64,000 nucleotides of DNA, taken from NCBI GenBank assembly GCA_002269645.1, contig NIVC01000586.1, positions 210,490-274,489 of the forward strand. Direction: 5' to 3'. Made by a program: the position numbers and the translations under genes. Below the pieces are notes generated by a model that did no database searches, was not told the DNA's origin, and saw only the letters and a program-made list of their open reading frames with translations. Below are positions 4,369-25,959 of the stretch, in pieces (the first letter of the stretch is position 1; each line of letters begins with the position of its first letter). This DNA comes from Macrostomum lignano (taxonomy: Eukaryota).

Positions 4369-7300
4369 ATGGCCTGCGACCTGCTAATGCCATCATCGCA
4401 AGGCGGAGCCAACAATCCAGCCTTCTCGCCGCTGACCCTGTTCGAGTGCACCATCACCAACGCACAGATGCTCATCGACTCCATGGCCGACCGGGACCTG
4501 ATGCAGGCCCTGAAGATCGCCGGCGGCCTCCACACCCACATTGTCGGCGTCATCGAGCCGCGCTACGATCGCGTCTGTCAGCGTAGCGACGAGCACGAAG
4601 CCTGCTGCCAGGCGGCTGCCGCGGCTGCAACATCAGCAACGCTGACTCCTTCCAAGTCAGCTGGCGCCGCCAACTCGGCCAGTTTCGGAGCCAATGGCAG
4701 CGGCGCCGATTTGAAATCTGCCGTAGCTGCCGCCGCCGCCGCGGCCGGCCTGAAGTCCGAGTCTACCGGCTCTGTGGCAGCTGGCGGCGTCAAGTCCGAG
4801 CTGCTGGACCCTGACGCGTTCCCCGAGGAAGACGAAGAGGACTGTCTGATCCTGGAGGAGGACTGCTCCTTCCCCGCCGCTGCTGCCGCAATGTCGCCGT
4901 CGGCCTCCAGCTCCGCCAGCCGAAAGCGCCACCGCCCGTTGTCGCCCTCGTCAAGTCTGCAGATGCCGGGCGGAGCCAGCGCGGGTTTTCCTGGCAGCGC
5001 CCAGCAACTGGCCGAGTGCAAAAATGCGCTCAGGATGGCCTATAAAAATATTAAAGGCAACGGGCCGCACCTGTTTGACTTTGCGCTGTCGTGAGTTGCT
5101 CTGCAATTCTTGCATCCCTTGTAGAGGGATTCGGTGGGGTATGCGCGGGTGAGGGATTCAGTGGGGTATGAGCGGGTGAGGGATTCAGTGGGGTATGAGC
5201 GGGTGAGGGATTCAGTGGGGTATGAGCGGGTGAGGGATTCAGTGGGGTATGAGCGGGTGAGGGATTCAGTGGGGTATGAGCGTGTGAGGGATTCAGTGGG
5301 GTATGAGCGTGTGAGGGATTCAGTGGGGTATGAGCGGGTGAGGGATTCAGTGGGGTATGAGCGTGTGAGGGATTCGGTGGGGTATGAGCGTGTGAGGGAT
5401 TCAGTGGGGTATGAGCAGCACAGTGAGGGATTCAGTGGGGTATGAGCGGGTGAGGGATTCAGTGGGGTATGAGCGGGTGAGGGATTCAGTGGGGTATGAG
5501 CGTGTGAGGGATTCAGTGGGGTATGAGCGTGTGAGGGATTCAGTGGGGTATGAGCGTGTGAGGGATTCAGTGGGGTATGAGCGTGTGAGGGATTCAGTGG
5601 GGTATGAGCGTGTGAGGGATTCAGTGGGGTATGAGCGTGTGAGGGATTCAGTGGGGTATGAGCGGGTGAGGGATTCAGTGGGGTATGAGCGTGTGAGGGA
5701 TTCAGTGGGGTATGAGCGTGTGAGGGATTCAGTGGGGTATGAGCGTGTGAGGGATTCAGTGGGGTATGAGCGGGTGAGGGATTCAGTGGGGTTGGGTATG
5801 AGCGGGTGAAGGATTCAGTGGCGTATAAGCGTGTGAGGGATTCAGTGGGGTATGAGCGTGTGAGGGATTCAGTGGGGTATGAGCGTGTGAGGGATTCAGT
5901 GGGGTATGAGTGTGTGAGGGATTCAGTGGGGTATGAGCGTGTGAGGGATTCAGTGGGGTATGAGCGTGTGAGGGATTCAGTGGGGTATGAGCGGGTGAAG
6001 GATTCAGTGGCGTATAAGCGGGTGAGGGATTCAGTGGGGTATGAGCGGGTGAGGGATTCGGTGGGGTATGAGCGGGTGAGGAATTCGGTGGGGTATGAGC
6101 GGCACAGTGAGGGATCCATTGGGGTCTGAGCAGCACAATGAGGGATTCAGTGGGATATGAGCAGCACAGTGAAGGATTCAGTGGGATATGAGCAGCACAG
6201 TGAGGGATTCAGTGGGGTATGAGCAGCACAATGAGGGATTCAGTGGGGTATGAGCAACACAGTGAGGGATTCAGGGGTCTGAGCAGCACAGTGAGGGATT
6301 CAGTGGGGTATGAGCAGCACAGTGAGGAATTCAGTGGGGTATGAGCAGCACAGTGAGGGATTCAGTGGGGTATGAGCAGCACAGTGAGGGATTCAGTGGG
6401 GTATAAGCAGCACAGTGAGGGATTCAGTGGGGTATGAGCAGCACAGTGAGGGATTCAGTGGGGTATGAGCAGCACAGTGAGGGATTCAGTGGGGTGGTGA
6501 GGCAGTGCAAGAACCCAACCAATCGCATTACATTTCATTACAATTTCACCAACCAATCGCAACGCCGCCGCAGCTTCCACGACCCGTCCAATCAGAGAGT
6601 ATCCGAGCAGATTATCGCTACGGCCCGCCAGCAGCTGAGCCACCTGCGCCTGCCTAACGATGTCTGGTGGAGTGAGTTGGTTATTTAATAATTTAAACAA
6701 ATGCATAAGTGACTACTCGCAACCAGTTAAAGTAATAGCATTAGCAAATGTATTAAGTGAATATTGATGTCGGCCCTCTCCTTGCATTTGGTGACTTCGC
6801 ACCGTGATCCAGTTTGATTGCCAGCTACAATAAGAGTTTTCATATCTTACCTGAGTATGGCTAGTAGCTAGTTTGTTTCCCATGGGACGGCAGCGCAACT
6901 GTCCCGTCATTAATTGATTCCGCCTCTATGAATTCATAATTAACTAATTATCTATGCTCTTCTTAACTGTTAGCAGTACAGTATGCATTTCAGTTTGTTG
7001 ATTTTGCTTCCCACTACCTGAGGTGCAGGTTTTATTGGTTATTTAAACCGACTGCAGGGTCGCGTGCTGATTATTGATACAAGCTGTGCAATTAGTTGTA
7101 CTTTTATTGCTGATCAGCTGCGTGCTGCCGTTCAACTGAAACTTTGTTTAGGCCAAGCCGGCAACCTGTGTAAGCGAATCAAAATCGAGCTGAACAATAA
7201 CAAGCGGCGCAATCGGCAGTTTCGCTGCAGGCAGAAGGTTGTTCTCCAACTGATTATTCTATTGGCTACCTAGCTAGCGAATCCCTACCAGCTGCAATGC

Positions 7301-10300
7301 TGAGCAGCCAGCCTCCCACATCCCCTAATGAGCCAGCCTCCCACATCCTTAATGAGCCAGTCTACCTCACCCCCTAATGAGCAGCCATCCTCCCACATCC
7401 CTAATGAACCAGTCTCCCTCACCCCCTAATAAGCAGCCAGCCTACCATATCCCCTAATGAGCCAGCCTCCCACATCCCTTAATGAGCAGCCAGCCTCCAA
7501 CACCCCATAATGAGCAGCCAGCCTCCCACACTCCCTAATGATCCAGCCTCCCACATCCCTTAATGAGCAGCCAGCCTCCCACACTCCATAATGAGCCAGC
7601 CTCCCACACCCCCTAATGAGCAGCCAGCCTCCCACACCCCCTAATGAGCAGCCAGCCTCCCACACCCCCTAATGAGCAGTCAGCCTCCCACACCCCCTAA
7701 TGAGCAGCTAGCCTCCCACACTCCATAATGAGCCAGCCTCCCACACCCCCTAATGAGCAGCCAGCCTCCCACATCCCTAATGAGCAGCCATTGAGTCTTG
7801 TCTTCTTAGCTTAGTTTATTGTGGCAGTGATAACAATCGGGAAAAGTTCTCAATGCCCTTATGAAGTGAAGCGGATCAAACTGCGGTGAAGCGGTGAAGT
7901 CTCGGGCAGTTGCTTGCTCAGCTCCGACAGTCATACCGCAGAGCCAATCAAATGCGTTTTTTAGAATCGCTCAACAGCAGCGGCGTGTTCGGTCAGGCGA
8001 GGCACAATTACTTAGCCAAATTTCGAATGCTTAAAATTAAACGGAAAAGCAACGTAGGTTTATTTGAGACTGTGTTCTCACTGAGCTGCGTGTGTCTGCA
8101 AACTCTGTTAGGTCATGGTTATAACTAGGGGGACAGGCAAATAAACTGACTTGCTGTGCCAGCGCTGTTAACCTGTAACCAAGTGTTAACCCGTAAACAG
8201 AGAAAGGCATGCCACTCGCCTTGCAGACAATAAAGCTGCTCGAGCATTTTATGCCGAGGAGAAAAATCGCGTGCTCACTCGAGTCCGAATGCGCCGCGTT
8301 GCCGGGCAGAAGTCTGTAAGGAGTCGCATCTGCCTTCCCTTCCCATCTTGTTTTTCTGAGTTGCAGTTTTGTCGCTTCTAATAGTTGCTTAATCAGCTGT
8401 TGCCACGGGCGTCTGGAGTTCCCGCTGGACTGGACTGGGGCGAGCATGGGGGGGGTAGTCAAATTGGGTATATATTCAAAAGGTGTTCATGACGACGCTC
8501 AAAGATCCCAGTGTCCAGTCCAGATAAGCTCCAGTGGTCCCTGGCCCATTCACCCATTGTTCATCCTGTTAATCGTTGTTATACGCTTTTATAAAAATTC
8601 GTAGCGATTCGGTGGCAAAGAGTTGGCCCATATCGACTAGAGTGCAGCTAGGCAGTATCTATGCAATAATAGCACACTGGATTGGACCGCTTACTGACCT
8701 TATTGCAGAGCACTGCTTCCCCAGCGTGTACGATGAGTTAACCAAATATGACAAGCATAGGGAGCGAATGAAGCACAGAATGCGAGCTCGCAGGCTTATG
8801 AACAGCGTACGTATTATAAATAGCTATAACTATTTGGCAGTGCAAGCCTGCTTGTTTCATAAATCACTGCCTAATCACGCATCAAACGCAAGGTCCGCGG
8901 CTAACACTTCCCATGGTTTCTTAGCGCAATCTTAATCCTCTTTGGGGTTGGGGATTTCTTTTTAAACTGTTTCAGGCCTGTCCAGTGCTGCGTTTGCTGA
9001 TCTGCAGCACAGCATATTGGAGAAGCGGCACTATACTAAGCATTCTGTGCGGAAATTCCGCAGCAAACTCAAGGTAAACACTGCCCTGGTCCGGATTGGG
9101 TCTTTGATATTAGCTTTTGCTTCTGCAGTCCAGTGTGTTCACCGTGTGTTCCGTGTTTGTTCTGGGCTATTAAAAGAGCAAGCTTTAATAGCCAAGATCT
9201 GGTCTGACAGTCGAATCCCACTGTCAAGTCCCAATCCCATAGTCAGAAGTCCCAATCCCGCAGTCAGAAGTCCCAATCCCATAGTCAGAAGTCCCAATCC
9301 CACAGTCAAAAGTCCCAATCTCACAGTGGGAAGTCACAATCTCACAGTCAGAAGTCACAATCTCACAGTCGTAAGTCACAATCCCACAGTCAAAAGTGAC
9401 AATCCCACTGTCAGAAGTCTCAATCTCGCAGTCAGAAATCCCAATCCCGCACTCAGAAGTCCCAATCCCACAGTCAAAAGTCCCAATCTCACAGTGGGAA
9501 GTCACAATCTCACAGTCAGAAGTCACAATCCCACAGTCGTAAGTCACAATCCCACAGTCAAAAGTAACAATCCCACTGTCAGAAGTCTCAATCTCGCAGT
9601 CAGAAATCCCAATCCCGCACTCAGAAGTCCCAATCCCACAGTCAGAAGTCACAATCTCACAGTCGTAAGTCACAATCCCACAGTCAGAAGTCCCAATCTC
9701 ACAGTGGGAAGTCCCAATCCCACAGTCAGAAGTCCCAATCTCACAGTCAGAAGTCCTAATCCCGCAGTTAGAAGTCCCAATCCCACATTCAAATCCCAAG
9801 CCCATAGTCAGAAGTCACAATCACACAGTCAGAAGTCACAATCACACAGTAGGAAATCACAATCCCGCAGTCAGAAGTCCCAATCACACAGTCGGAAATC
9901 ACAATCCCGCAGTCAAAAGTCCTAGCCCTGCTAATTTCAAATTAATCTCTACTGACTAATCCCTATTAAATTTATTCTGATAAATTGATAGGTTGCATGC
10001 CTGTTGGAGGTGCATAGCAACCCGGTAACGATGGTAACAAATTTCACGCAGCATCAAAAGCAAGGCCCGGCCGCCCCAGTTTAGCCAGCTCCGTTAGAGA
10101 TTGAATCCAGTGTTTCAGGACCGCCCGGCAGTAACACCTGCGCCGTGCGCTGCATTGCAGGCTGCGCTGAGGAATTGTGGCTGCTATTGAAGAAAGCTGT
10201 GGCGCACAAGCGCGAAAGAGACGTCTTCTATCAGCGCAAGGGGCGCCTGAAAAATAAAGTAAAACCATGCAGTCTATGCTCATTTGCTTACTTTTTCCAC

Positions 10301-11114
10301 CGGGTTTTATCCTTTGTTGTGAATTAACCAATTGGGTCGGTAAGACGCATATAGGCTTTTAGGAAGTAAGTGCTAATCAGGGACTTTTCTGCTCTCATTT
10401 ATACGACTGACATGATGCCTCATCTTTAAAATTGATTGGGCTGCGTGATATTACACCTCGCTGCCTCCCGATTTCCATCTCCCATTTCCAACCTCCATCT
10501 CCCCCTCCCAGCCTCCCTCTCTACCCCCTCCCAGCCTCTCTCTCTACCCCCTCCCAACCTCCCTCTATCTCCCGCTCCCAACCTCCATCTCTACCCCCCT
10601 CCGAACCTCCCTCTCCATCTCCTCTTTTCAATCTACCTTCATCTCCCCCTCCCGACCTCCCTCTCCATCTCCCTCTCCCGACCTACCTCTCCGTGTCCCA
10701 CACGCCACATACAGCTCCTGTTTTCTGACCCATCAGAAACTGGCCAGACGGCAGAAGAGCTTCGAACTGCTAGCAACCAGTTTATCCACCGACAAGTTCG
10801 ACAAGTACCGCATCATTTTGTCCCGGGACTACACTTCGTCTGACGAGGAAGCCGATGTTGGCAGCGGCGGTGCCAGCGCGAGCGGCGATGACGGAGGAGG
10901 CGGCGGAGGCGTCCTTCGAGTCCGCGAGCTGCCCTGGGAATCTGCGGAGCTGCGCGAGATGAAGCAGCAGCTGGACTCGATCTATCTGGAGAATTGCGCA
11001 ACTCAGAAGCAGGCGCAGCAGTTGCGCAGCACAGTGCGCGACTCCGGCTGCGTCAGCGGCAGGACTCCACCTGCCAACTGCCCGTCCTGGGCGCTGTCTA
11101 ATGAGTACCGCTAA
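4369..11114 (+). CDS. Paralog 1 of an uncharacterised gene with a mutually exclusive exon cluster; 427-431 aa per isoform
   Basis: Exon 1 is 4369-5090 (donor GTGAGT, phase 2). Exon 2 is 6574-6671 (98 nt, CAG acceptor, GTGAGT donor, phase 1). One of six cassettes follows (7152-10258). The last exon is 10737-11114 (phase 0, KLARRQKSFELLATSL...SRDYTSSDEE...WESAELREMKQQLD...PSWAL). Flanking splice positions match paralog 2 and the joined frame is open. Confidence 0.85.
5120..6497. repeat. 27-bp minisatellite (GAGCGGGTGAGGGATTCAGTGGGGTAT) in intron 1 of paralog 1
   Basis: About 50 near-identical tandem units; explains the YERVRDSVG-type ORFs. Confidence 0.95.
6884..6906 (+). promoter_or_regulatory. 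Candidate splicing docking site for the paralog 1 cassette cluster
   Basis: GGGACGGCAGCGCAACTGTCCCG lies 212 nt after the exon-2 donor, a similar distance to the paralog 2 dock. It is complementary to 7122-7133 (12 bp) and 7903-7913 (11 bp with a bulge); other matches are short. Confidence 0.4.
7152..7237 (+). CDS. Paralog 1 cassette exon 1 (86 nt): (S)QAGNLCKRIKIELNNNKRRNRQFRCRQK
   Basis: TTTAG acceptor, weak GTTGTT donor, phase 1 to 0, open frame, basic. Confidence 0.6.
7305..7790. repeat. Minisatellite, about 25-30 bp (TAATGAGCAGCCAGCCTCCCACACCCCC)
   Basis: Tandem degenerate units between cassettes 1 and 2. Confidence 0.9.
7965..8053 (+). CDS. Paralog 1 cassette exon 2 (89 nt): (K)SLNSSGVFGQARHNYLAKFRMLKIKRKSN
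   Basis: TTTTTAG acceptor, GTAGGT donor, phase 1 to 0. Confidence 0.75.
8227..8315 (+). CDS. Paralog 1 cassette exon 3 (89 nt): (N)NKAARAFYAEEKNRVLTRVRMRRVAGQKS
   Basis: TTGCAG acceptor, GTAAGG donor, phase 1 to 0. Confidence 0.75.
8709..8806 (+). CDS. Paralog 1 cassette exon 4 (98 nt): (K)HCFPSVYDELTKYDKHRERMKHRMRARRLMNS
   Basis: TTGCAG acceptor, GTACGT donor, phase 1 to 0. Confidence 0.75.
8976..9073 (+). CDS. Paralog 1 cassette exon 5 (98 nt): (S)LSSAAFADLQHSILEKRHYTKHSVRKFRSKLK
   Basis: TTTCAG acceptor, GTAAAC donor, phase 1 to 0. Confidence 0.75.
9215..9925. repeat. 21-bp minisatellite (AGTCCCAATCCCACAGTCAGA)
   Basis: About 33 tandem units between cassettes 5 and 6; explains the SPNPTVR ORF. 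Confidence 0.92.
10161..10258 (+). CDS. Paralog 1 cassette exon 6 (98 nt): (S)CAEELWLLLKKAVAHKRERDVFYQRKGRLKNK
   Basis: TTGCAG acceptor, GTAAAA donor, phase 1 to 0. Confidence 0.75.
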
Positions 11115-11259: not shown

Positions 11260-11532
11260 TCCATCCATGGGATACCCGCCACACCTGGTCTCTCCCATCC
11301 ATGGGATACCGCCACACCTGGTCTCCCCCATCCATGGGATACCGCCACACCTGGTTTCCCCCAGCCATGGGGTACCCGGCACACCTGGTCTCTCCCATCC
11401 ATGGGGTACCCGCCACACCTGGTTTCCCCCAGCCATGGGGTACCCGGCACACCTGGTCTCTCCCATCCATGGGGTACCCGGCACACCTGGTCTCTCACAT
11501 CCATGGGGAACCCGGCACACCTGGTCTCTCAC
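11260..11532. repeat. About 33-bp minisatellite (CACACCTGGTCTCTCCCATCCATGGGGTACCCG)
   Basis: About 8 tandem units downstream of the paralog 1 stop. Confidence 0.9.
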
Positions 11533-12119
11533 ATCGAGTTCGTCATGCTGTCAATGTTGACTTTTCGAATCAAAATTTGAATAGCTCTCCAATGCTGGCA
11601 CAGAGGCTCCATGCGATTTCAATACCTGGGGAAAAGTATTTGCTGCATTTAAGCTTCAATATTTGCACTGCGAGTAGTTGCGCAATGCGTCTCTTATCTA
11701 TAATATTTTACTTGTTGCTGCTATCCCAGTCAGTAAATATTATTGCAATTAGCGAACTTTCATAAACCCCACATTGTCACATGTCTCTGTTCACTTGTTA
11801 ATCTGTAATAAGTTTGCCTGTATTCTGTTTTCATGTGTTTATTATTTTTTGCTGTTGTTTAACTGCCCCCAGTCATTTCCGCAGCTTTGCTTTTGCGTTA
11901 ACACACTGTCTCGTTCTGTACATGCTATAAAATACGATAATTACATAACAATATGATAATAATTAATTTATTTGCTAAAGAATTTTTCATTCTTTTTCAG
12001 TTGTTGCCGATTAATTATCGGAAAATGCAGTTGTATTACTGTTCTGAAGCTTTGCTCATGTAGTGAAATAGACCAGGCTTTATTATTATAGCATAGTGTA
12101 ATTCATAGTGCATGTTTAG

Positions 12120-12846: not shown

Positions 12847-15800
12847 ATGACGGACATTCTGCCTAGCCACTCCATCACCGGGGGCGTTTTTTCACCCCTG
12901 ACCCTGTTCGAGTCCACCATCACCAACGCGCAGATGCTGGTGGAGTCCATGGCCGAGCGGGAGCTGTTCTCCGCCCTGCGCATCATCGGCGGCCTGCACA
13001 GCCACGTTGTCCAGGTCATGGAGCCGCGCTACGGCCGCCTGTGTGAGCGCAGCGACCACCTCGCCGAGCTGGAGGCTGCCGGCCTGGATCAAAGCCACGG
13101 CTCCGCTGCCGAGGCTGCCGAAGCCACTTCATCCTCGTCGGCTGCTGCCGCTTCTAGCAGACGCTTCGCTAAGGAGGAGAAACTGCTAGGCGACACCGAC
13201 ACGGAGCAGCAGTGCACCTCCGTGCTGCGCTCCGCCCTTGGCACCATCAAGGTATTTCCTATTCACCGCGTTGTGATGTCGGCGCCTTTCCTATTATATT
13301 TGATGTCGCGGACTTTCCCATCTCCTCTGATGTCGCCGACTTTCCCATCTCCTCTGATGTCGCCGACTTTCCCATCTCTGATGTCGCCGCCTTTCCCATC
13401 TTTTTTTATGTCGCCGCCTTTCCCCACTCCTTTGATGTCGCCGCCTTTCCCCACTCCTTTGATGTCGCCGCCTTTCCCGTCTCTTTGATGTCGCCGTCAT
13501 TCTCTTCTCTTCTCTTCTGGTGCTCAACAGATGGAGAACTTTGACGCGGCCGGCGCTTCCGCCCTGCCATCCGCCGCTAACGCAAACTTCGGCGAACAGC
13601 TGGAGCCGCCGGAGATCTTGGAAGAGGACGCCGATGATGAAGACGAGGATGACGATTGCGTCATCACCGACTACTTCGACGACAGCAGCTTTGGCGCTAG
13701 CGGCATCGGCGCCTTCGGTGGCGTCGGCCCGTCGCCCGCCAAAATGCCGCGACTCGGCGGGGTCGGCGGCGGCGCAGGCGACAGCTCGATGCCGGCCGAG
13801 TGCAAGACCATCATGCGCCGGGCTTACAAAGCTCTCAAGGGCAACGGGCCGCATCTGTTTGACTTCAGCCTGCCGTGAGTCTCCTTAGCTGGCACGCCGG
13901 TTACCAGTCCCGGCCTCAGTCTGGAAACGCCTCTAGAAATCTTCGACTTTACATCAGCCAAAATGCAAACCCTGGTTAGGCTACCCTGAACAAACCCTGA
14001 GCCACCCCTGAACAAACCCTGAGCCACCCCTGAACTCAAGTCTGAGCCATTCCCTGAACTCAACCCTGAGCCACCCCTTGAACTCAACCCTGAGCCACCC
14101 CCTGAACTTAACCCTGAGCCACCCCCTGAGCTCAATCCTGAGCCACCCCCTGAACTCAACTCTGAGCCACCCCCTGAACTCAACTCTGAGCCACCCCCTG
14201 AACTCAACTCTGAGCCACCCCCTGAACTCAAATCTGAGCCACCCCCTGAACTCAACTCTGAGCCACCCCCTGATCTCAACCCTGAGCCAGCCCCTGAACT
14301 CAACCCTGAGCCACCCTTGAACTCAACCCTGAGCCAGCCCTGATCTCTGTGGACTCAAGAGCGCCGCCTCCCCCACCGCCGGCCCCACAGCTTCTCTTCG
14401 GAGCACAACCAGCGAGTTGCCACCCGCGTCACCGCCAAAGCCAAGGAGATGGCCCAGGGCAAGGGCTGGCCCGAGGACATTTGGCTGAGTGAGAAACAGT
14501 GCCGCTTTTTGTGCATTTAGATATAAAGTTTGATAAGTTGATAAATGATGTGTAGAATACAACTCTTAATTAAGATTACACTGCGTATGAAGTAGTTAAT
14601 AGAATAGATTAATCGTAAAATCTTATCTTAGTTATATTCTATTAATACTACTCGCACAGACTAGCCAAGTAGTATCTATAGGCTGCGCTAATTTGCTAAT
14701 TTTACCTGCCCTCAAGTCTGGAAACGTCGCAAGTAATTTGGGTACAAGAAATATTTAATAACTAATTTTAATCTCCTTTCAACTTGGGCTGCTTCTAATA
14801 GGTTCATGTCTGACTATTTGAGACACAATCAGAGACTTAATTATGCATTAATTATCTAATTAATTATTTGCATTATTTCTATTGCCGAACTGCCTACAGT
14901 TAGCAGGTGGTAAAGCGATGTAATGCTACTGAGACTGTTGCCTATTCGACGTTTCTTATTGGCCATTTAGAATGAGTTTTGAATAAAGCTGAACTGCTCA
15001 ACTCACACTTAGAACTGCCCTACGGCTCAAGGCTAGTCTACCTGTACCTGGATTTTCGGCAAAAGATGAGGTTTAAGCATCGATGCGTTGTAAGCTTTGC
15101 TGGTCATCTCTGTTTCTATCGGTTTTTTGTGTCACACCAGCCTCCACTGTCCTGCTTGCGATGTTCGCCCAGACTCGCGTCTTTATAACAGGCTTTGCTC
15201 AAAACAGTTTTGCCAATATGTTTCTGGCCTCCAATTTGCCCAGGGCTGCCCAAAGAGTCCAGAGTAAATCGGATTCACTGCACCTATGGAGCCCGTCTGC
15301 GCGCCAAGCACAGGCAGATTGTGAGTTCCCTCCCCCTGTGCCCTCCCCTGTACCTTGATGAGCCGCCTCTCCCCCTGTGCCTTTGATGAGCCGCCTCTCC
15401 CCTTGTGCCTTTGATAAGCCGCCTCCCTCCCCCTGTGCCTTTGATAAGCCGCCTCCCTCCCCCTGAGCCTTTGATGAGCCGCCTCTCCCCATGTGCCTTT
15501 GATCAGCCGCCTCTGCCCCTGTGCCTTTGATGAGCGGCCTCCCTTCCCCTGAGCCTTTGATAAGCCGCCTCTCCCCTGAGCCTTTGATGAGCCGCCTCTC
15601 CCCTTGTGCCTTTGATAAGCCGCCTCCCTCCCCTGAGCCTTTGATAAGCCGCCTCTCCCCTTGTGCCTTTGATAAGCCGCCTCCCTCCCCCTGAGCCTTT
15701 GATGAGCCGCCTCTCCCCCATGTGCCTTTGATCAGCCGCCTCTGCCCCTGTGCCTTTGATGAGCGGCCTCCCTTCCCCTGAGCCTTTGATAAGCCGCCTC

Positions 15801-18800
15801 TCCCCTGAGCCTTTGATGAGCCGCCTCTCCCCTTGTGCCTTTGATAAGCCGCCTCCCTCCCCCTGTGCCTTTGATAAGCCGCCTCCCTCCCCCTGAGCCT
15901 TTGATGAGCCGCCTCTCCCCACGTGCCTTTGATCAGCCGCCTCTGCCCCTGTGCCTTTGATGAGCGGCCTCCCTTCCCCTGAGCCTTTGATAAGCCGCCT
16001 CTCCCCTGAGCCTTTGATGAACCGCCTCTCCCCTTGTGCCTTTGATAAGCCGCCTCCCTCCCCTGTGCCTTTGATAAGCCGCCTCCCTCCCCCTGAGCCT
16101 TTGATGAGCCGCCTCTCCCCCATGTGCCTTTGATCAGCCGCCTCTGCCCCTGTGCCTTTGATGAGCGGCCTCCCTTCCCCTGAGCCTTTGATAAGCCGCC
16201 TCTCCCCTGAGCCTTTGATGAGCCGCCTCTCCCCTTGTGCCTTTGATAAGCCGCCTCCCTCCCCCTGTGCCTTTGATAAGCCGCCTCTCCCCTTGTGCCT
16301 TTGATAAGCCGCCTCCCTCCCCCTGAGCCTTTGATAAGCCGCCTCTCCCCTTGTGCCTTTGATGAGCCGCCTCTCCCCTTGTGCCTTTGATAAGCCGCCT
16401 CCCTCCCCTGAGCCTTTGATAAGCCGCCTCTCCCCTTGTGCCTTTGATCAGCCGCCTCTCCCCCTGTGCCTTTGATAAGCCGCCTCCCTCCCCCCTGAGC
16501 CTTTGATGTCCGCCTGTCTTTGCGCTGGGTTAAGCAAGTCAGTGATAAATAAGTCTACAATTTTACAATCAATTCGACGTTTCCCGTCTGGACAGTTGGC
16601 TAAAAACTCTCGCCTATAAGTGCACCCAGAGTCTGAGGCGATTTTCCCGCAGGACTGCCGAAAGTCGGCCGCCTGTCCGAGATTTTCTTTGTTTTCAGAA
16701 GTCAAATCCGAAACAAGCTGCGACTCGTTGTACGCAATTGTCACAGTTCCGCACTTTCTCTGTTGTGTTGGGAATTTTTCTGTCAAAAATTTTCTACGAT
16801 GCATATCGGCGTTTCCTGACTAAAGTTGAGCAGATTTGGCTTTGCGTAGCAAATTTCTACCAAAGTCGCTATCGTCTACTCACGCCAGTCAGTAGTGTAT
16901 TGAGGAGTGCTCGGCTCACTTTTTACATCTATTTTTAGATCTGCCTTCCAGCGGCAAAATCAGGAAGATGTTCACCGATTTTAGGCAGAAGATGCGCGCT
17001 AGGCTGGTGCTTGGCGTGCGTGCCCGATTTTCTCTGTTTAGGTTTTTATTTAATTTTTTGACGTTTCCCGGCTGCCTGTAAGCTCACTGCTGTGTGAGGC
17101 TTGTGCTTGCTAACACTTGACCTGACTGCCCCGCTGTTGCAGGGCTGCCACACACCGGCCGGCCGACCGCCATATTCAACGATTTTAGAAAGAAAATGCG
17201 CACCAGGTTTCGAATGGATGTTAGTGATAATTGCTTTAGGTGTTTCTATGGGGCTCTGCGAATTCCGCTTCAGTGCTGAGACGTTTCCCGACAATGGCCG
17301 GGTGCTGCAATTGTGCGAACCCCCCTGTGTCCGTCACGCCACCGACTGCCGCTTGCAGATCTGCCGCCCAAGGCCCGCCTGCTCGCCATTTTTGGCGACT
17401 TTAAAAAGAAAAGGCGATTCAAGTCCCGCTCTGATGTCAGTGCAGCTGGGTGGCTTTTCGCCTCATCTGTGTTGTCTGTTTTCCCCCATTTTTGCTTGCA
17501 CTGCCTTGGCTGGGTAGGCAGGGTAGCTAGATTGGTAGACAGACAAATTGATTGATTGACAGACAGGCAGGCAGGCAAACAAACACTAAGATAGGCAAAC
17601 AGACAGACACAGATACGCTAGCAGACCAACGCAATTGCGCGGTGCACCGTGGGGGGGGGGTGAGGCTGTACATTGCTGGCACTGTTGGGCCAGCCGCCCT
17701 TACTCGCTGTAACTTATCGCTCAGCCTGTTACAATGCCAGACGCAATGCCAGACGTTTCCTGACAACTCAGACTGTGAATTGTACAGCACACAGAATTGC
17801 CAGCAAACAGTTCCCCATCGCGCGCGTTGCAGAGCTGCCCATGAACAGCCGATTGATCTGCATATTCGCCGACTTTAGAAAGAAGATGCGCAACAGATTT
17901 CGTTCAGATGTTGGTCCGGGTTCAAAACTCGATTTCAGAGCTTTCAGGCTGCGATATGAAAATATTTGTTACATGCTATTGGAACTACTGTACTGACTGC
18001 TGATCAGTAGTCAATGCCATCATGATGTGAAAAATGTTTTCCTCTCTGATTTGCTTCTGTTTAAACTGTACTGAGCTGTCGAAAAGCCACTGCATGACCT
18101 GAGCTATGACTGAAAAGCCACTGCATGACCTGATCTATGACTGAAAAGCCACTGCATGACCTGATCTATGACTGAAAAGCCACTGCATGACCTGATCTAT
18201 GACTGAAAAGCCACTGCATGAGATCTGAGCTATGACTGAAAAGCCACTGCATGAGATCTGAGCTATGACTGAAAAGCCACCACTCTATGACCTGAGCTAT
18301 GACTGAAAAGCCACCACTCTATGACCTGAGCTATGACTGAAAAGCCACCACTCTATGACATGAGCTGTGACTGAAAAGCCACCACTCTATGACCTGAGCT
18401 ATGACTGAAAAGCCACTGTATGAAGGCTATGACTGAAATGAATCTCAAAGCAGCCAGCTCTCGCAGTCTTGCCTCGCTTCCCCCGAACTTGCAGAAGCTG
18501 AACCGCCGTCAGAAAAGTTTCGAACTCGTGGCCACCAGCCTGACCTCTGACGAGCTGGAGAAGTTCCGCGTGATCCTCACCAGGGAGTACACCAGCTCGG
18601 ATGAGGAGTGCGGCTCCGGCGGCGCCGACCAGCTGCGGGTCCGCGAGCTGTCCTGGGAGTCCGACGAGGTGAAGCGGCTGAAGCGGCAGCTGGACCAGGT
18701 GTACGCGGACAACTGCGCCACCACCAAGCAGAAGCAGCAGCTGGCCAGGTGCATCCGCGACCCCGTCCGATCGCGGTCGCAGCGGCCGCCGCCCGAGGCT

Positions 18801-18884
18801 GCGCCAAGCTGGGCTTTGAAGGCGCCGCTGCAGAAGAACCGGCCGGGAGACGGCGCTCCGCCGCCCGCCTCCGGCACCGCCTGA
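12847..18884 (+). CDS. Paralog 2 of an uncharacterised gene with a mutually exclusive exon cluster; 437 aa per isoform
   Basis: Exons are 12847-13251, 13531-13874 (donor GTGAGT, phase 2), 14391-14488 (98 nt, phase 1), one of seven 77-nt cassettes, and 18495-18884 (KLNRRQKSFELVATSL...TREYTSSDEE...WESDEVKRLKRQLD...PSWAL). The total is 1314 nt with an open frame. The N-terminus FSPLTLFESTITNAQML is shared with paralog 1. Confidence 0.88.
13985..14340. repeat. 24-bp minisatellite (CCCTGAACTCAACTCTGAGCCACC)
   Basis: About 14 tandem units in an intron of paralog 2. Confidence 0.92.
14715..14733 (+). promoter_or_regulatory. Putative docking site (AGTCTGGAAACGTCGCAAG) for the paralog 2 cassette cluster
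   Basis: Reverse-complementary to a motif found upstream of all seven cassettes. It lies about 227 nt after the donor of the 98-nt exon. Confidence 0.8.
14947..14955 (+). promoter_or_regulatory. Selector A (CGACGTTTC)
   Basis: 9/9 complementary to dock positions 14721-14729; about 58 nt before cassette A. Confidence 0.65.
15013..15089 (+). CDS. Paralog 2 cassette A (77 nt): (K)LPYGSRLVYLYLDFRQKMRFKHRCV
   Basis: CTTAG acceptor, GTAAGC donor, phase 1 to 0, homologous to B-G. Confidence 0.88.
15155..15175 (+). promoter_or_regulatory. Selector B (CTTGCGATGTTCGCCCAGACT)
   Basis: Pairs with the whole dock: 11 bp (one G-U) plus 7 bp around a 1x3 internal loop; about 69 nt before cassette B. Confidence 0.7.
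15244..15320 (+). CDS. Paralog 2 cassette B (77 nt): (R)LPKESRVNRIHCTYGARLRAKHRQI
   Basis: CCCAG acceptor, GTGAGT donor, phase 1 to 0. Confidence 0.85.
15330..16505. repeat. About 23-26-bp minisatellite (GTGCCTTTGATAAGCCGCCTCCCTCCCCCT)
   Basis: About 45 units with higher-order blocks, lying between cassettes B and C. Confidence 0.95.
16575..16588 (+). promoter_or_regulatory. Selector C (CGACGTTTCCCGTC)
   Basis: 10 contiguous bp with the dock; about 65 nt before cassette C. Confidence 0.7.
16653..16729 (+). CDS. Paralog 2 cassette C (77 nt): (R)LPKVGRLSEIFFVFRSQIRNKLRLV
   Basis: CGCAG acceptor, GTACGC donor, phase 1 to 0. Confidence 0.85.
16807..16821 (+). promoter_or_regulatory. Selector D (CGGCGTTTCCTGACT)
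   Basis: 14/15 positions pair with the dock (one G-U); about 118 nt before cassette D. Confidence 0.7.
16939..17015 (+). CDS. Paralog 2 cassette D (77 nt): (N)LPSSGKIRKMFTDFRQKMRARLVLG
   Basis: TTTTAG acceptor, GTGCGT donor, phase 1 to 0. Confidence 0.88.
17060..17073 (+). promoter_or_regulatory. Selector E (GACGTTTCCCGGCT)
   Basis: 13/14 positions pair with the dock (one G-U); about 70 nt before cassette E. Confidence 0.7.
17143..17219 (+). CDS. Paralog 2 cassette E (77 nt): (R)LPHTGRPTAIFNDFRKKMRTRFRMD
   Basis: TTGCAG acceptor, GTTAGT donor, phase 1 to 0. Confidence 0.88.
17280..17292 (+). promoter_or_regulatory. Selector F (GACGTTTCCCGAC)
   Basis: 12/13 positions pair with the dock; about 67 nt before cassette F. 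Confidence 0.72.
17359..17435 (+). CDS. Paralog 2 cassette F (77 nt): (N)LPPKARLLAIFGDFKKKRRFKSRSD
   Basis: TTGCAG acceptor, GTCAGT donor, phase 1 to 0. Confidence 0.88.
17752..17764 (+). promoter_or_regulatory. Selector G (GACGTTTCCTGAC)
   Basis: 12/13 positions pair with the dock; about 69 nt before cassette G. Confidence 0.72.
17833..17909 (+). CDS. Paralog 2 cassette G (77 nt): (K)LPMNSRLICIFADFRKKMRNRFRSD
   Basis: TTGCAG acceptor, GTTGGT donor, phase 1 to 0. Confidence 0.88.
18085..18435. repeat. 28-31-bp minisatellite (GACCTGAGCTATGACTGAAAAGCCACTGCAT)
   Basis: About 12 units in the intron before the last exon of paralog 2. Confidence 0.92.
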
Positions 18885-19789
18885 CCGCCTTCGCGAGTTA
18901 CTCCTGCTTGACCTGACTTCATCTGCCCTTCTCCGTTATCCGCTCCCATACGCCCTTACCCTCCGTTATTCGCCCGTCCATTCGCCCTTACCCTCCGTTA
19001 TCCGCCCCCTCATCCGCCCTTACCCTCCGTTATTCGCCCCTCCAGCCGCCCTTATTTTCCGTTATCCGCCACCTCATCCGCCCTTTCTCTACGTTATCCG
19101 CCCCCACCCGCCCTTACCCTCCGTTATCCGCCCCCTCATCCGCCCTTACCCTCCGTTATTCGCCCCCTCATCCGCCCTTACCCTCCGTTATTCGCCCCTC
19201 CAGCCGCCCTTTCTCTTTATCCGCCCCCTTTCTTGCCCTTGCTCTCACAGTCCCTGTTATCCGCCCCGCCTCCGCTCAGTCGCAGTTCGCAAGCGCGGAC
19301 CAGTATTCGAACCCGGGGCAACGAGTTATTGAACTGTTATTAAAAGCCGCTCTGTGCCCTCCTGTTTGCGCGTCTGCAATCCCCTGTGCCGCTGTTCAAT
19401 GTACATTGACTTGTGTTTTATTGAATATTTTCTGTTCGTGGCAGACTTTGCATTTTTATTTTTGTAAACTATTTGAGTATCAATATATTTGCTTTGTCAA
19501 TCACCCATCAATTAGCATGGACTGTTTTATTTTTCATTAATATACACCCGCGTTTAATCACAATGTCCAGGCTCTGTTGAACTGCAATTGAATGTCTTTA
19601 ACCAGGCAAATACAGAACCGCCAACGCATTAACAACTGCTTATTCAATTATCAATTGCTGTTGCGAAATGATCGAATTCTTATCGATAAATATCTTGATA
19701 AGCTGGCTGCTTTATTTTGAAAATAGATTTTTGCAATTGCATTATCAAAAATATCAGTTTAGTTTGTGGACCCTGAAATAATTGGGAAT

Positions 19790-21360: not shown

Positions 21361-21838
21361 TCTTTCGGCCTCATCAATCGTCATTGGACATTCGAACTTC
21401 TGAGAACATTGAGAAGTCAGTCCTACGTTACACAATTTTAAGCGGCCCACATACAGGTTAGACGCCCCAAAGACTGTTTGCGAGCTTTGTTTGTCCAATG
21501 CTGTTTATTTAACTTTCTTCGCGCGGACTGCGAGCCCAGAGCGCTGAGTTGCGCTGCTGGGTAACTGCTGAGATGAATTTTGGCTTTGCTTGCTCACGGC
21601 TCAGCAGCGCTCAGCTTCTGCATGCGATGCAGAAGGCAAATATAATTTCTTAATTCATAGCAGCAGAGAATTGAGTACAAGCTCGAGATTTGAGCCGAGC
21701 AAATTCAAGTGTCTTCGGTGTTGCCGAGCCCCATGGCAACCTCGGAATACACAATTCGGAGTTTGAGTTTGAGTTGAAAAATACTGCGCACTGCACGGCA
21801 GCGACGGCAGAGCAGAGAAGCAGAGCAGAAGCAGCAAG

Positions 21839-23461
21839 ATGCCGATCTCTTCCGGAGCGGGTGGCAAGCCCAACTCCTACTTCAATCCCGGCAACGCCCT
21901 CTCCCGTCGGCCCTCGGTCAGCAGCGCCGCCAACAGCGGCAACTACGGCGGTGGCGGCAGTCCCGGCTATTACTACGGCAGCTACGGCGGCGAGCCCGTT
22001 GCTATGGCAACAGGCGCGGCCGCTACGCCCAGGGGAGTTCAGGTGGGTCCGTATGATTATGGCTAATAGGCCTGCATGTGCTCCGCTGTGGCGGGATCCC
22101 GGATCACTCGTGCCATACCGGCACTCTATTCGTCACTCCATGGCACTCCAACTTCACACCCCGAATCCCAGGTTGTGGACATTTCCAGCGGCCGGGTCCC
22201 CCAGAACGCGCAGGCCTCGGTGACCCGTGACGCCCCGGCCGGCCGGCGCTGCTGCCCCTGCCCGGCCCGCGGGCGGCCGGAGATGAAGATGCCGGCCATG
22301 CCGAAGAGCAAAATGGCCACCGCGGGCGGCGCCGTCACCCGGCACGGCTGCTGCATCTTCCTGATCGGCCTGCTGGCCCTGGCCATCGCCGCCGGCCTCA
22401 TCGCCGGCCTGTACTTCCTGTGCACCGGCCTCAGCGGCATCCGGTCCGACAGGGGCGCCTTCTACCTCATCCCGGGCAGGCGGCCCGGCGACCTCATGTG
22501 GGTCATCTACGGCACCCTGCAGGAGTGCGAACCCGTGACCACCAGCTCGTCCACCACCAGCACCACCACCACCACGAGCACCACCACCACCGCCACCACC
22601 GCGGCCACCAGCGGGACCACCGAGTCAACGACTCCTACCACCACGGCTGCGGCCACCACCTCGGGCACCACTCTAATCTCCTGCGCCAGCACCACCTACC
22701 GATACCAGCAGGTGAGATTGATGTGTTTCAGGTGTGCAATTCAAATTGGAGGGATAGGATATGGTAAGATACATAAAAGGCATATAATTATCAGGTGAAA
22801 ATGGAGTGGGGTGGTTGGCTTATAGTTATCAGGTGAGAATGGAGCTTTGGGGTTGTTGGCTCTTAATTATCAGGTGAGAATGGAGTGGGGTGGTTGGCTT
22901 TAATTATCAGGTGAGAATGGAGTGGGGTGGTTGGCTTGAATTATCAGGTGAGAATGGAGTGGGGTGGTTGGCTTTAATTATCAGGTGAGAATGGAGTGGG
23001 GTGGTTGGCTTGAATTATCAGGTGAGAATGGAGTGGGGTGTTTGGCTTTAATTATCAGGTGAGAATGGAGTGGGGTGGTTGGCCCTTAATTATCAGGTGA
23101 GAATGGAGTGGGGTGGTTGGCTTATAATTATCTGGTGAAATTGTCATCAGGTGTTTATGGCTTCACGCGCAGTAACTGATAATTAAAAGCAAACCTTCCC
23201 TGTTTCATTCTCACCTGCAAATATCTGGTAAATGGAAAGTGTGAGGCTTCTGTTATCGCTAATTGTACCTACCTCATATAGTCAAAGCTTCCATTCAGAT
23301 AATATTAGATTTTGGCACACCACACGCAGGTAACACTGGCAGGTGGCAGGTCCGGACCCGATCCGATCTTTGTTGCGGCCTCCGCCGCTGCGGCCATCGT
23401 CCGTCAGCTGCTGATGATGCCGAGCCTGCCAGCCGGATTCTGGGGTCACGTGACAGGCTGA
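21839..23461 (+). CDS. Putative type II single-pass membrane protein with a Thr/Ser-rich stalk
   Basis: Exons are 21839-22042 (GTGGGT donor), 22172-22711 (in frame; TM segment CCIFLIGLLALAIAAGLIAGLYFLC, then a poly-Thr tract; GTGAGA donor) and a tentative last exon 23330-23461. No recognised domain. Confidence 0.6.
22790..23140. repeat. About 38-bp minisatellite (AATTATCAGGTGAGAATGGAGTGGGGTGGTTGGCTTT)
   Basis: About 9 tandem units in an intron. Confidence 0.9.
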
Positions 23462-24499
23462 TGCTGAAAATTGGCTGGTAGAGGCGACGGGCCAGCAGCA
23501 TGGAACTGAAGTTTTTCTTGCAGCGAGCCGCAGAATTTAATCGATGCTCAAACCGCACTACTGTCTTAAGTAGAGTAGCCAGCTTCCTCTTAAAAAAATT
23601 TTCTTCTATAAAACAAAAATCCGGTATGTATCGAAAAGATAGTAAGCCTGTCTTTTCAAAAAATGCTTAAATTTTTTACCGCTATTTCTGTGCAGTCCAT
23701 TTTCTGAAATCTGAAATAAAGCCCAACTATATCAGATATTTACAGTGCTCTGTGTACTTTAAGTGTTCTTTGGCTATCAACGTTGCAAAAATAAAGCTTA
23801 TCCAGAGCTATTATTTACTAAAAATGTTAATCTTTTATAAAATAAATACGCAGCTTTTCAGATTTTATAGTTAAAAAGGCACACAGACAGACAGAAAAAC
23901 AGTCAGTCAGAAAGAGAGACACTGGGACATTAAAAGACTGGGGGCATTAAGAGACTGGAGCATCAAGACACAGAGACATTAAGACACTGAGACATTTAAG
24001 ACACTGATACATTTAGACACTAGGAAATTTAAGACAATGAGACATTTAAGACAATGGGACATTAATTAGACACTGGGACATTAAGACACTGGGACATTAA
24101 GACACTGGGACATTAAGACACTGGGAAATAAGGACACTAAGACATAAAGAAACTGGGACATTTAAGACAATGGAACATTTATTAAAAACTGGGACATTTA
24201 AGACACTGGGACATTTAAGACAATGGGACATTAATTAGACACTGGGACATTTAGGACAATGGAACATTAATTAAAAACTGGGACATTTATGACAATGGGA
24301 CTTTAGCGACTCGCAAAATGAAATGGCGCGAGAGAAAGTAAACTTTTATTTTTCACAATCGCATATAAATACTGCGCGACAGAGAGGCATGGGGAGGTGC
24401 GCATAGTCCGTGCCAGACCCTGCGGCTTAGCGCGCCGGCCGTCTGGGTGCACCCACCCCCCGGGCAGGGTGAGTCAGGCCGATTGAGTGCAGGTGCACT

Positions 24500-25290
24500 G
24501 CCGGCCAGGCGGGCCGAGAAGTCCTGGATGTGCGGCACTGGGTAGCGGTCGGGCACCGTGGCGTCGTTGAGCCGCCTGAAGTCGCCGCAGGGCCGCCACC
24601 CGCCCGAGGCCTTGGGCACCATGTGCAGCGGCGAGGACCACGGGCTGTTGGACCGGCGCGCGATGCCGAGCTGCTCCAGGAGCCGGAACTCCTCCTTGGC
24701 CACCGCCAGCTTGTCCGGCGGCAGGCGGCGAGGGCGGGCGTGGACCGGCGGGCCCTGAGTCGGGATGTGGTGCTCGACCCCGTGGCGCGGCTCCGCTCGC
24801 TGGAAGCTGGGCTCGGTGAGGGCGGGGAACTCGGCCAGCAGCTGGCTGTACGGGTCCGCAGCGGCGGCTGCGGCGAGCTGCAGTCCGGGCCCCGTGCCGT
24901 CCAGCAGGTGCACGCTGGCGAATGAGCGGGCGTCCAGGAGTCGCCGGTGCGGCAGATCCACCAGCAAGCCGTGGTGTCGCAGGAAGTCGGCGCCGATCAG
25001 CGGGCGGGAGACCTCGGCCAGGATGAACGGCCACGAGCAGCGCCGGATTCCGAGGTCGAGCGTGAGCTGGCGGGTGCCGAAGGTGCGAATGAGGCTGCCG
25101 TTGGCTGCAAAGAGCGGCGGGCCGGGCGTGTGCAGGCGAGCATCCGAGCCATCGACGGGGAAAATGCTGACCTCGGCGCCGGTGTCGACCAGGAAGCGCC
25201 GGCCCGTCTGCACATCGGGGATGAGGAGCAGGCTGCTGCTGTTGCCGGCCGCCGAGCTGTTCACTGACGGCCGGCCTGCCCGTTTCCCTG
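24500..25290 (-). pseudogene. pol: Truncated pol (aspartic protease plus N-terminal part of reverse transcriptase)
   Basis: [10 protein letters not shown] protease motif; RT motifs [12 protein letters not shown] and CGDFRRLN...DRYPVP. It ends at DFSARLAG, fused to the LTR, with no YxDD, RNase H or integrase. Confidence 0.9.
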
Positions 25291-25959
25291 GAAGCTGCAT
25301 GGAGATTCGCAGCGGCGTGCCTTGGCTCCGAAACGGCGATGGAAGTAGCACAGGCCGTCGTCAGGGTGATGTTGTTGCTGCTTAGACGGCCGACTGCCGC
25401 CCCGACGGGTCGCCGAAACCACCGGCTGGGTGGGCTCCGCTGCCGGCTGCTGGACGGAGGCCGCGGCGAGCTGCGGCCGGCTGGCCCACAGCTTGTCGGC
25501 GAGCTGCGCTGCTTCCCGCGGGTCGCTGAAGTCGGCGGTCGCCATTGCCATTCTGACCTCAGCGGGCAGCTGCTGGCGGAACAACTCTTCGAAGAGCAGG
25601 CAGGGCCGGTGGTCGCCAAGCAGGGCGAGCATCTCGTCCATCAACTCCGTGGGACGCCTGTCGCCGAGGCCGGACATGTTGAGCAGGCGGCTGGCCCGCT
25701 GTTGTCGGGACAGCTCGAAGGTGCCGAGCAGTCGCTCCTTCAGCCTCTTGTACTTTTCTTCCCTCGGCGGATTCTCCAGCGCGTCGATGAGCCGCTCGGC
25801 GGTCTGCTGATCGAGCGCCGCGATGACGTGGCTGTACTTCGTGTCGTCATCGGAGATCTTCCGCAGAGCGAATTGAGCTTCGGCCTGAACAAACCAAATA
25901 CGAGGTTGAGATGCCCAAAACGTGGGCAGTTTGAGTGCAACGGCTGACTCCGTAGTCAT
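25261..25959 (-). CDS. gag: Retrotransposon Gag, 232 aa
   Basis: ALKLPTFW...[10 protein letters not shown]-terminus and a C-terminal Cx2Hx9Cx3C knuckle ([18 protein letters not shown]). Slippery heptamer G GGA AAC at 25282-25288, with pol in the -1 frame. Confidence 0.9.

Follow-up and report, generated by a model that had tools for sequence, protein, structure and literature searches.

The stretch of the Macrostomum lignano genome considered here (64,000 nucleotides of contig NIVC01000586.1; "the window" below means this whole 64-kb stretch) carries on its + strand a tandem pair of paralogous genes, gene A (4369-11114) followed by gene B (12847-18884), and in each of them a row of related alternative exons, here called cassettes, lies between two constant exons. 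A first-pass annotation of positions 14391-18884 had described the exchanged exon as a basic helix inside a probable nucleic-acid-binding domain, and its coordinates proved exact, running from the first base of the gene B constant exon to the last base of the stop codon. Taken as a whole, the observation made there has been partly confirmed and its interpretation partly supported. The region is the 3' half of one of two tandem paralogues in a flatworm-expanded gene family, whose C-terminal domain of about 200 amino acids (aa) is widespread among bilaterian invertebrates.

The best database match of the assembled gene B protein is the M. lignano model BOX15_Mlig032950g2, with which it is 100% identical, and all of its close relatives come from M. 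lignano. Exon 1 (12847-13251), an open reading frame (ORF) followed by a GT donor and 100% identical to the same model, carries the start codon and encodes the N-terminal helical domain FSPLTLFESTITNAQML..., and exon 2 (13531-13874), which ends in phase 2, covers an acidic linker and the beginning of the C-terminal domain, ...ECKTIMRRAYKALKGNGPHLFDFSLP. Constant exon 3 (14391-14488) encodes FSSEHNQRVATRVTAKAKEMAQGKGWPEDIWL, that is (P)FSSEHNQRV...EDIWL, and has a phase-1 donor, while the last exon (18495-18884) encodes KLNRRQKSFEL...EYTSSDEE...LRVRELSWESDE...LD...SQRPPPEAAPSWAL... and terminates in the stop codon. After splicing, the upstream junction reads FDFSLP/FSSEHNQRV, and both constant flanks are as the first reading of the region had quoted them. 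The corresponding parts of gene A are an exon 1 matching model BOX15_Mlig028241g1 (4369-5090), a constant exon encoding FHDPSNQRVSEQIIATARQQLSHLRLPNDVWW and again ending in a phase-1 donor (6574-6671), and a last exon that begins KLARRQKSFELLATSL... (10737-11114).

Between the constant exons, a scan for basic AG...GT segments that are open in the required frame recovered seven cassettes in gene B, every one of 77 nucleotides (nt): B1 (15013-15089, KLPYGSRLVYLYLDFRQKMRFKHRCV), B2 (15244-15320, RLPKESRVNRIHCTYGARLRAKHRQI), B3 (16653-16729, RLPKVGRLSEIFFVFRSQIRNKLRLV), B4 (16939-17015, NLPSSGKIRKMFTDFRQKMRARLVLG), B5 (17143-17219, RLPHTGRPTAIFNDFRKKMRTRFRMD), B6 (17359-17435, NLPPKARLLAIFGDFKKKRRFKSRSD) and B7 (17833-17909, KLPMNSRLICIFADFRKKMRNRFRSD). 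The gene A array (7152-10258) has six, at 7152-7237, 7965-8053, 8227-8315, 8709-8806, 8976-9073 and 10161-10258, with lengths of 86, 89, 89, 98, 98 and 98 nt, and these diverge from one another much more than those of gene B do. The earlier count of 13 isoforms is thus reached as seven plus six, although it spans two genes and the gene A array lies outside the segment to which that count had been attached.

All 13 cassettes have AG/GT borders, are entered in phase 1 and left in phase 0, and have a length of 2 mod 3, and therefore the reading frame survives the inclusion of a single cassette only. Each of the 13 single-cassette mRNAs encodes an intact ORF of 427-437 aa (437 aa for the gene B isoforms), whereas splicing in none or two of the cassettes leads to a frameshift and early stop codons. 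Tandem homologous exons of shared phase and length class, with their own splice sites and with a frame that is destroyed by the inclusion of none or of more than one, are features expected of a mutually exclusive exon cluster, and both arrays show them. The notion of a constant scaffold with one exchanged segment is thus imposed by the frame and phase of every cassette. From this logic it can be inferred that every mRNA carries exactly one cassette, and each isoform would then combine the same scaffold with a different basic helical segment of 26-33 residues.

Gene B also appears to contain the elements of an RNA-pairing mechanism by which a single cassette could be selected. In the intron that immediately follows the constant exon there is a putative docking site (14712-14734, TCAAGTCTGGAAACGTCGCAAGT), the reverse complement of the selector core. 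Each of the seven cassettes is in turn preceded, at a distance of 60-140 nt, by a selector whose core is CGACGTTTCC. Selector 1, upstream of B1, lies at 14944-14960 (TTCGACGTTTCTTATTG; predicted duplex with the docking site of -18.5 kcal/mol, top 4.3%) and is conserved in the paralogues, and selector 2 lies at 15154-15174 (CTTGCGATGTTCGCCCAGACT; -30.5 kcal/mol, top 0.2%). Selectors 3 (16573-16592, TTCGACGTTTCCCGTCTGGA), 4 (16806-16822, TCGGCGTTTCCTGACTA), 5 (17058-17074, TTGACGTTTCCCGGCTG), 6 (17278-17294, GAGACGTTTCCCGACAA) and 7 (17750-17766, CAGACGTTTCCTGACAA) were likewise assigned by motif and duplex energy. Together, the predicted duplexes of the seven selectors range from -18.5 to -30.5 kcal/mol, which places them among the top 0.2-4.3% when every 30-nt window of the variable region is ranked. 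A second docking-like site (CAGTCTGGAAACGCCTCTAG, 13915-13934) is found upstream of the main one, in the intron before the constant exon, and may be a decoy, a further docking site or a remnant.

The enrichment of the motif points in the same direction. All five exact occurrences of GACGTTTCC in the window fall within the docking/selector region of gene B, and when up to one mismatch is allowed, 18 occurrences are found against 8.3 expected, eight of them within 13923-17760 and in the expected strand arrangement. Ungapped complementarity counts that admit G-U pairs do not tell the selectors apart from background, and the evidence for the selectors consists of motif enrichment and duplex energies, which replaced those counts. 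One docking site beside the constant exon with a complementary selector before each variable exon is an arrangement found in gene B only; it is of the type known from Dscam exon 6, with one intronic docking site complementary to the selector preceding any given cassette. Single inclusion in gene B is thus probably enforced by the frame rule together with the predicted docking/selector pairing. In the paralogous locus L001, the intron before the constant exon contains a 25-nt tandem repeat (11462-11945 of that locus) with a palindrome-like TGTTTCCTGGAAAC that unites the selector and docking cores, which hints at how complementary motifs of this kind may arise or spread.

Other loci of the same genome show that the arrangement is not confined to the window. 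Two of them, L001 and L002, contain the same tandem pair, an A-like gene followed by a B-like gene, with cassette arrays in both genes; in L002 the B-like array comprises at least ten cassettes of 77 nt. In two more distant paralogues (L004 and L005), the same pair of constant exons encloses several candidate cassettes. When positions 14930-15345 of the window are aligned with their counterparts in L001 and L002, the upstream motif is conserved together with cassettes B1 and B2, while the remaining intron is unalignable; similarly, the docking core is conserved in the B-type genes of both loci (L001b and L002b) within otherwise unalignable introns, as are the selector cores. Conserved exons and selectors amid unalignable introns form the pattern that would be expected under purifying selection. 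M. lignano has a greatly enlarged set of family members, which form at least 13 clusters at 50% identity.

This conservation bears on the possibility that most cassettes are decaying duplicates, or pseudo-exons, of which only one or two are used, so that no functional repertoire exists. Such decay would be compatible with the weak splice donors of A1 (GTTGTT), B7 (GTTGGT) and B3 (GTACGC), with cassette use having been inferred from sequence instead of transcripts, and with the public gene models, which use a single cassette (P0004, P0005, P0007 and P0009 have one apiece) or misjoin cassettes. However, 13 of 13 cassettes are still open in frame, of the expected length class and bordered by AG/GT, the selector has been retained by every cassette of gene B, B1 and B2 with their selector are conserved between paralogous loci where introns are not, and two models, P0015 and P0018, share identical flanks and carry different cassettes. 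We regard the pseudo-exon explanation as highly improbable. As for the public annotation of these loci in general, it is unreliable, several M. lignano UniProt models either misjoining two cassettes or running on into the intron. The names "Exocyst subunit Exo70", "Sec8" and "Rab-GAP TBC", given in UniProt to family members (P0002, P0003, P0006, P0008, P0192 and others), were rejected, having no Pfam backing in the members scanned.

The origin of the arrays is indicated by the amphioxus Branchiostoma floridae (locus L003), in which the stretch equivalent to a cassette, DAAKRYYRSKRDDQVRAQKGTYAEHRHSVKRNGRQQQ, is a single constitutive exon of 110 nt and no array is present. The intron before this exon is in phase 1 and that after it in phase 0, positions and phases being as in Macrostomum, and the next exon starts with KLARRRKAY. 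A single amphioxus exon at the same intron positions and phases implies that the Macrostomum arrays arose by tandem duplication of one ancestral constitutive exon. This exon encodes most of a long central alpha-helix, E[IV]xxACxxYFxSx[KR]DxxxR...G....HR...RR..R, running straight into KLxRRxxAL, and its tandem duplication in Macrostomum has given rise to arrays of 6-10 cassettes. A domain homologue found on short metagenome-derived contigs, P0172 (306 aa), is encoded by an uninterrupted ORF of 921 nt (5001-5921 of L006 and 2685-3605 of L007), where the genes of amphioxus and of the flatworm have several exons, and it could be a retrocopy or a mobile copy. The description of the family as transposon-associated found no backing in the few loci examined (L003, L006 and L007), where no transposase domain was seen: the L003 gene stands alone within its 3-kb flanks and the neighboring ORFs of L006 and L007 are short and without a recorded Pfam family, loci too few to decide the matter.

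To which family the domain belongs was approached with a profile built from seven Macrostomum family members and searched against 1.84 billion representative proteins, which gave 572 matches at E<=1e-3 and 146 at E<=1e-10, most of them over the C-terminal ~200 residues. The named homologues come from amphioxus, a sea star, two hemichordates, a brachiopod and a bivalve, and all are annotated as uncharacterized. The invertebrate proteins share a series of motifs, C..VR..Y, N..V, E[IV]xxACxxYFxSx[KR]DxxxR...G....HR...RR..R, KL.RR..AL, YMSSEES, VR.L.WES..L...K..LD and S.R..P...P.WA, in which the cassette corresponds to the stretch from E[IV]xxACxxYF through the basic run up to the invariant KL.RR.

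A resemblance to the C-terminal domain of C14orf93 had been suggested in the first-pass annotation, and a remote homology to it has been confirmed. The human sequence was checked by exact look-up (CN093_HUMAN, 538 aa). A hidden Markov model (HMM) of 19 non-Macrostomum invertebrate homologues matches its residues 302-461 with 34.6 bits (E 9e-13 at Z=1, a single-target test), and hhalign aligns residues 306-485 to alignment A3 with 92.6% probability (E 4.5e-7). The peptide ELKGACVAYFLTKRREYR, the helix to which the cassette had been said to align, does fall gap-free on the family motif E[IV]xxACxxYFxSx[KR]DxxxR, inside the segment that the cassette replaces. The order of C-terminal motifs is likewise shared with C14orf93 (also RTFC; 4931414P19Rik, or P19, in the mouse): C..VR..Y, N..V, E[IVL]xxACxxYF.[ST].[KR], a basic run, an acidic [ST]S[DE]EE patch, a [RK]..[WF][ER][SA]..L...LD helix and then S.R.P. 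In contrast, the N-terminal two-thirds are unrelated, the final P.WA motif is unaligned in the human protein, and we know of no alternative-exon array in a vertebrate C14orf93 gene.

The limits of this relationship are also clear. Human C14orf93 scores 1014 bits against Pfam DUF4616 (PF15394), a model covering the whole protein, whereas the isoforms of the window, the Macrostomum paralogues and 29 invertebrate homologues gave no match to it (gathering cut-off 27 bits), even at E<=1 to 10. C14orf93 was not retrieved by either of two word-indexed searches for homologues, one of which included ELKGACVAYFLTKRREYR as an added alignment row. The Macrostomum-only profile compared directly with C14orf93 was not significant (E 0.07), so that invertebrate intermediates were needed and the link is therefore transitive. 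These alignments establish a true homology to residues ~300-485, the C-terminal third of C14orf93, but one that is remote and transitive, and the proteins are not DUF4616 members as Pfam defines that family. Published work connects C14orf93/RTFC with familial thyroid cancer and thyroid function (PMC5322522) and with cortical development (PMC10163356), and for the mouse homologue P19 no known domain was found by InterPro or HHpred (PMC10163356).

All cassettes are strongly basic, with 7-10 lysine and arginine residues among 26-33 and a net charge of +6 to +9, so that of the earlier wording "basic, amphipathic" the first part stands; the second is not borne out above chance, the helical hydrophobic moment per cassette being no higher than that of shuffled sequences. 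Over 23 B-type cassettes the consensus is x-L-P-x-x-x-R-[IL]-x-x-[IL]-F-x-x-F-R-x-K-x-R-x-[KR]-x-[RK]-x-x. Hydrophobic residues at positions 8, 11, 12 and 15 and basic residues at positions 7, 16, 18, 20, 22 and 24 are kept, and those in between vary. The hydrophobic columns 8, 11, 12, 15, 19 and 23 of the same 23 cassettes share one 120-degree helical arc, and the most variable positions face the opposite way, a pattern that fits, and does not prove, a constant anchoring face and a variable exposed face within a basic frame.

Such charge raises the question of whether the cassette is mainly a nuclear localization signal (NLS) or basic targeting signal, its swapping tuning nuclear import or sub-nuclear targeting instead of ligand specificity. 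In the mouse, a bipartite NLS is predicted from residue 369 of P19, and the tagged protein localizes to the nucleus of HEK293 cells and also occurs in the medium (PMC10163356). This predicted signal coincides with the segment equivalent to the cassette, all cassettes keep an R-x-K-x-R-x-[KR]-x-[RK] run abutting KLxRRQK, and hydrophobic moments that do not exceed chance are in line with such a signal. However, 6-10 versions per gene in every paralogue are not needed for an NLS, and the conserved hydrophobic positions, together with a confidently predicted helix continuous with the scaffold, indicate a structured element. A role confined to targeting seems unlikely to us, although NLS and structured-binding functions are not mutually exclusive.

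The structural prediction was obtained with AlphaFold2 for the paralogue P0005, modeled in place of the window isoforms and 56% identical to a gene B isoform (alignment A1). The full-length model consists of an N-terminal helical hairpin (predicted local distance difference test score, pLDDT, about 80-88), a disordered acidic linker and a confident C-terminal domain (pLDDT 84-98). The P0005 cassette (residues 304-329; pLDDT 74-88) makes up the last part of helix 299-308 and the initial 19 residues of helix 311-344, the latter running on into the constant KLSRRQRSFELVATS. In the domain-only model (mean pLDDT 86.4; predicted template modeling score, pTM, 0.64) the cassette (pLDDT 77-84) is part of one continuous helix of ~46 residues. 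The AlphaFold check for disorder, one of those proposed with the earlier interpretation, has thus turned out in its favor, the cassette of this paralogue being predicted as helical and ordered.

A helix of this length might also serve as a protein-protein interface, through a coiled coil or dimerization, the cassettes setting which isoforms or paralogues pair and no nucleic acid being involved. The position of the cassette within the continuous ~46-residue helix, the spacing of 3-4 residues between hydrophobic columns 8, 11/12, 15, 19 and 23, and the failure to find a match to a nucleic-acid-binding fold are in line with such an interface, and a combinatorial pairing code would be well served by at least 13 paralogue clusters that each carry arrays. 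Nevertheless, with a charge of +6 to +9 per cassette, homotypic pairing of the helices is disfavored, except where the acidic linker or the SSDEE patch acts as the partner, and the AlphaFold2 domain (a monomer model only) is compact with a pTM of 0.64. It is improbable, in our judgment, that pairing of this kind is what the cassettes encode.

The explanation that we favor, and to which we assign a probability of about 0.6, is that the ancestral exon of a C14orf93-type domain was duplicated into single-choice cassettes encoding a basic helix, that docking/selector pairing governs the choice in gene B, and that the result is a diversified binding specificity. The most likely purpose of cassette swapping would thus be to diversify what a nuclear protein binds, the partner being nucleic acid or protein. 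Several results weigh against this explanation. The use of the cassettes and their strict exclusivity are deduced from sequence and from one-cassette gene models. No docking/selector motif was found in gene A by a k-mer scan of its variable region (6672-10736), and single inclusion in that gene may rest on the frame and nonsense-mediated decay (NMD) or on another mechanism. Besides the hydrophobic moments of individual cassettes, which do not exceed those of shuffled sequences, the helical periodicity over the 23 cassettes is weak, the hydrophobic moment being reached by 404 of 5000 shuffles and the variability moment by 1087 of 5000. The modeled P0005 cassette has no LP motif, which is present in seven of seven gene B cassettes of the window and probably caps or kinks the helix. 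The secretion reported for the mouse homologue complicates a purely nuclear role (PMC10163356).

The most direct objection concerns binding itself. Pfam assigns no consistent family to the window isoforms, the paralogues or the invertebrate homologues, and neither single-sequence nor family-profile searches of PDB sequences found a relative. Foldseek against the PDB gave a best E of 0.57 for the full-length model and of 2.0 for the domain model, with template modeling (TM) scores <=0.25, and against BFVD it gave no match for the domain model. Neither the "probable nucleic-acid-binding domain" nor the Myb-like fold of the first interpretation is therefore backed by these searches, no profile or fold match to a known nucleic-acid-binding domain (Myb/SANT-like, basic leucine zipper or basic helix-loop-helix (bHLH) basic regions, others) having been obtained. 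The UniProt name "Alcohol dehydrogenase transcription factor myb/sant-like", attached to one family member, has no Pfam backing and was set aside. The basic charge of the cassettes and the nuclear localization of the mouse homologue are what suggests a binding role (PMC10163356).

The meaning of these results extends beyond the flatworm. The C-terminal third of C14orf93 is an ancient bilaterian domain, and evolution has singled out one of its exons, encoding a basic helix, for diversification in a flatworm. This choice naturally directs attention to the region where specific contacts are most likely to be made, a swapped part of one helix that belongs to a domain humans share. In its broadest form the idea is a tentative and rather doubtful one: a family of nuclear proteins with Dscam-style arrays might swap the exposed face of a basic helix, at least 13 paralogue types with about 5-10 cassettes each might amount to a large repertoire of nucleic-acid or protein binders, and the swapped helix might mark the functional surface of human C14orf93/RTFC, at roughly residues 358-398. 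Macrostomum lignano is amenable to transgenesis and RNA interference, so that isoform function is testable.

As for the surroundings of the two genes, long minisatellite arrays with periods of 17-63 nt, and of up to 201 and 430 nt, occur in nearly every intron and intergenic stretch of the window, among many other places at 5124-6495, 7301-7790, 9214-9922, 13984-14347, 15343-16515, 18081-18438 and 18919-19245, and a 1.2-kb array of this type separates cassettes B2 and B3. Downstream, ORFs at 21690-22800 (+ strand) apparently belong to a separate gene, whose product has a predicted transmembrane segment, LIGLLALAIAAGLIAGLYFLC, and after it a mucin-like run rich in Thr and Ser. Further on, at 24353-25959 (- strand), long ORFs with a retroviral-type gag, an aspartic protease and the start of a reverse transcriptase are probably a fragment of a long terminal repeat (LTR) retrotransposon, apparently unrelated to genes A and B.

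Mutually exclusive clusters with docking sites and selectors have been described for the exon 6 cluster of Dscam1 and for arthropod 14-3-3zeta, Mhc and MRP (PMC4691838, PMC6071210), and our literature searches, in which docking/selector arrays are described for arthropod genes, found no report from a flatworm. Exclusive arrays of the docking/selector type, studied mostly in arthropod Dscam1, would also occur in a platyhelminth and recur there across a gene family. Like the Dscam1 exon 6 cluster, gene B has an array of homologous exons of equal length, one docking site by the constant exon, a selector for each variable exon and a reading frame that enforces single inclusion. Unlike it, the gene has a flatworm host and belongs to an unrelated gene family, it swaps about 26 residues of one helix and not half of an immunoglobulin domain, the Macrostomum arrays recur in many paralogues, and the pairing, which is predicted only, has no counterpart motif in gene A.

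A different type of comparison is offered by TCF3 (E2A), in which mutually exclusive exons encode the alternative bHLH segments of E12 and E47. Here too, exclusive exons swap a basic helical segment in an otherwise constant protein, but TCF3 has two alternatives only, within a defined DNA-binding bHLH, whereas the fold of the Macrostomum domain matches nothing known and its binding role is putative. In Drosophila mod(mdg4) and lola, whole C-terminal zinc-finger or FLYWCH modules are swapped by alternative 3' exons and trans-splicing. The analogy with these genes, drawn in the first-pass annotation, holds insofar as one constant N-terminal part serves a large number of alternative variable modules, but it is a loose one: where mod(mdg4) and lola join alternative 3' ends, Macrostomum would swap an internal exon between two constant exons, by mutually exclusive splicing in cis.

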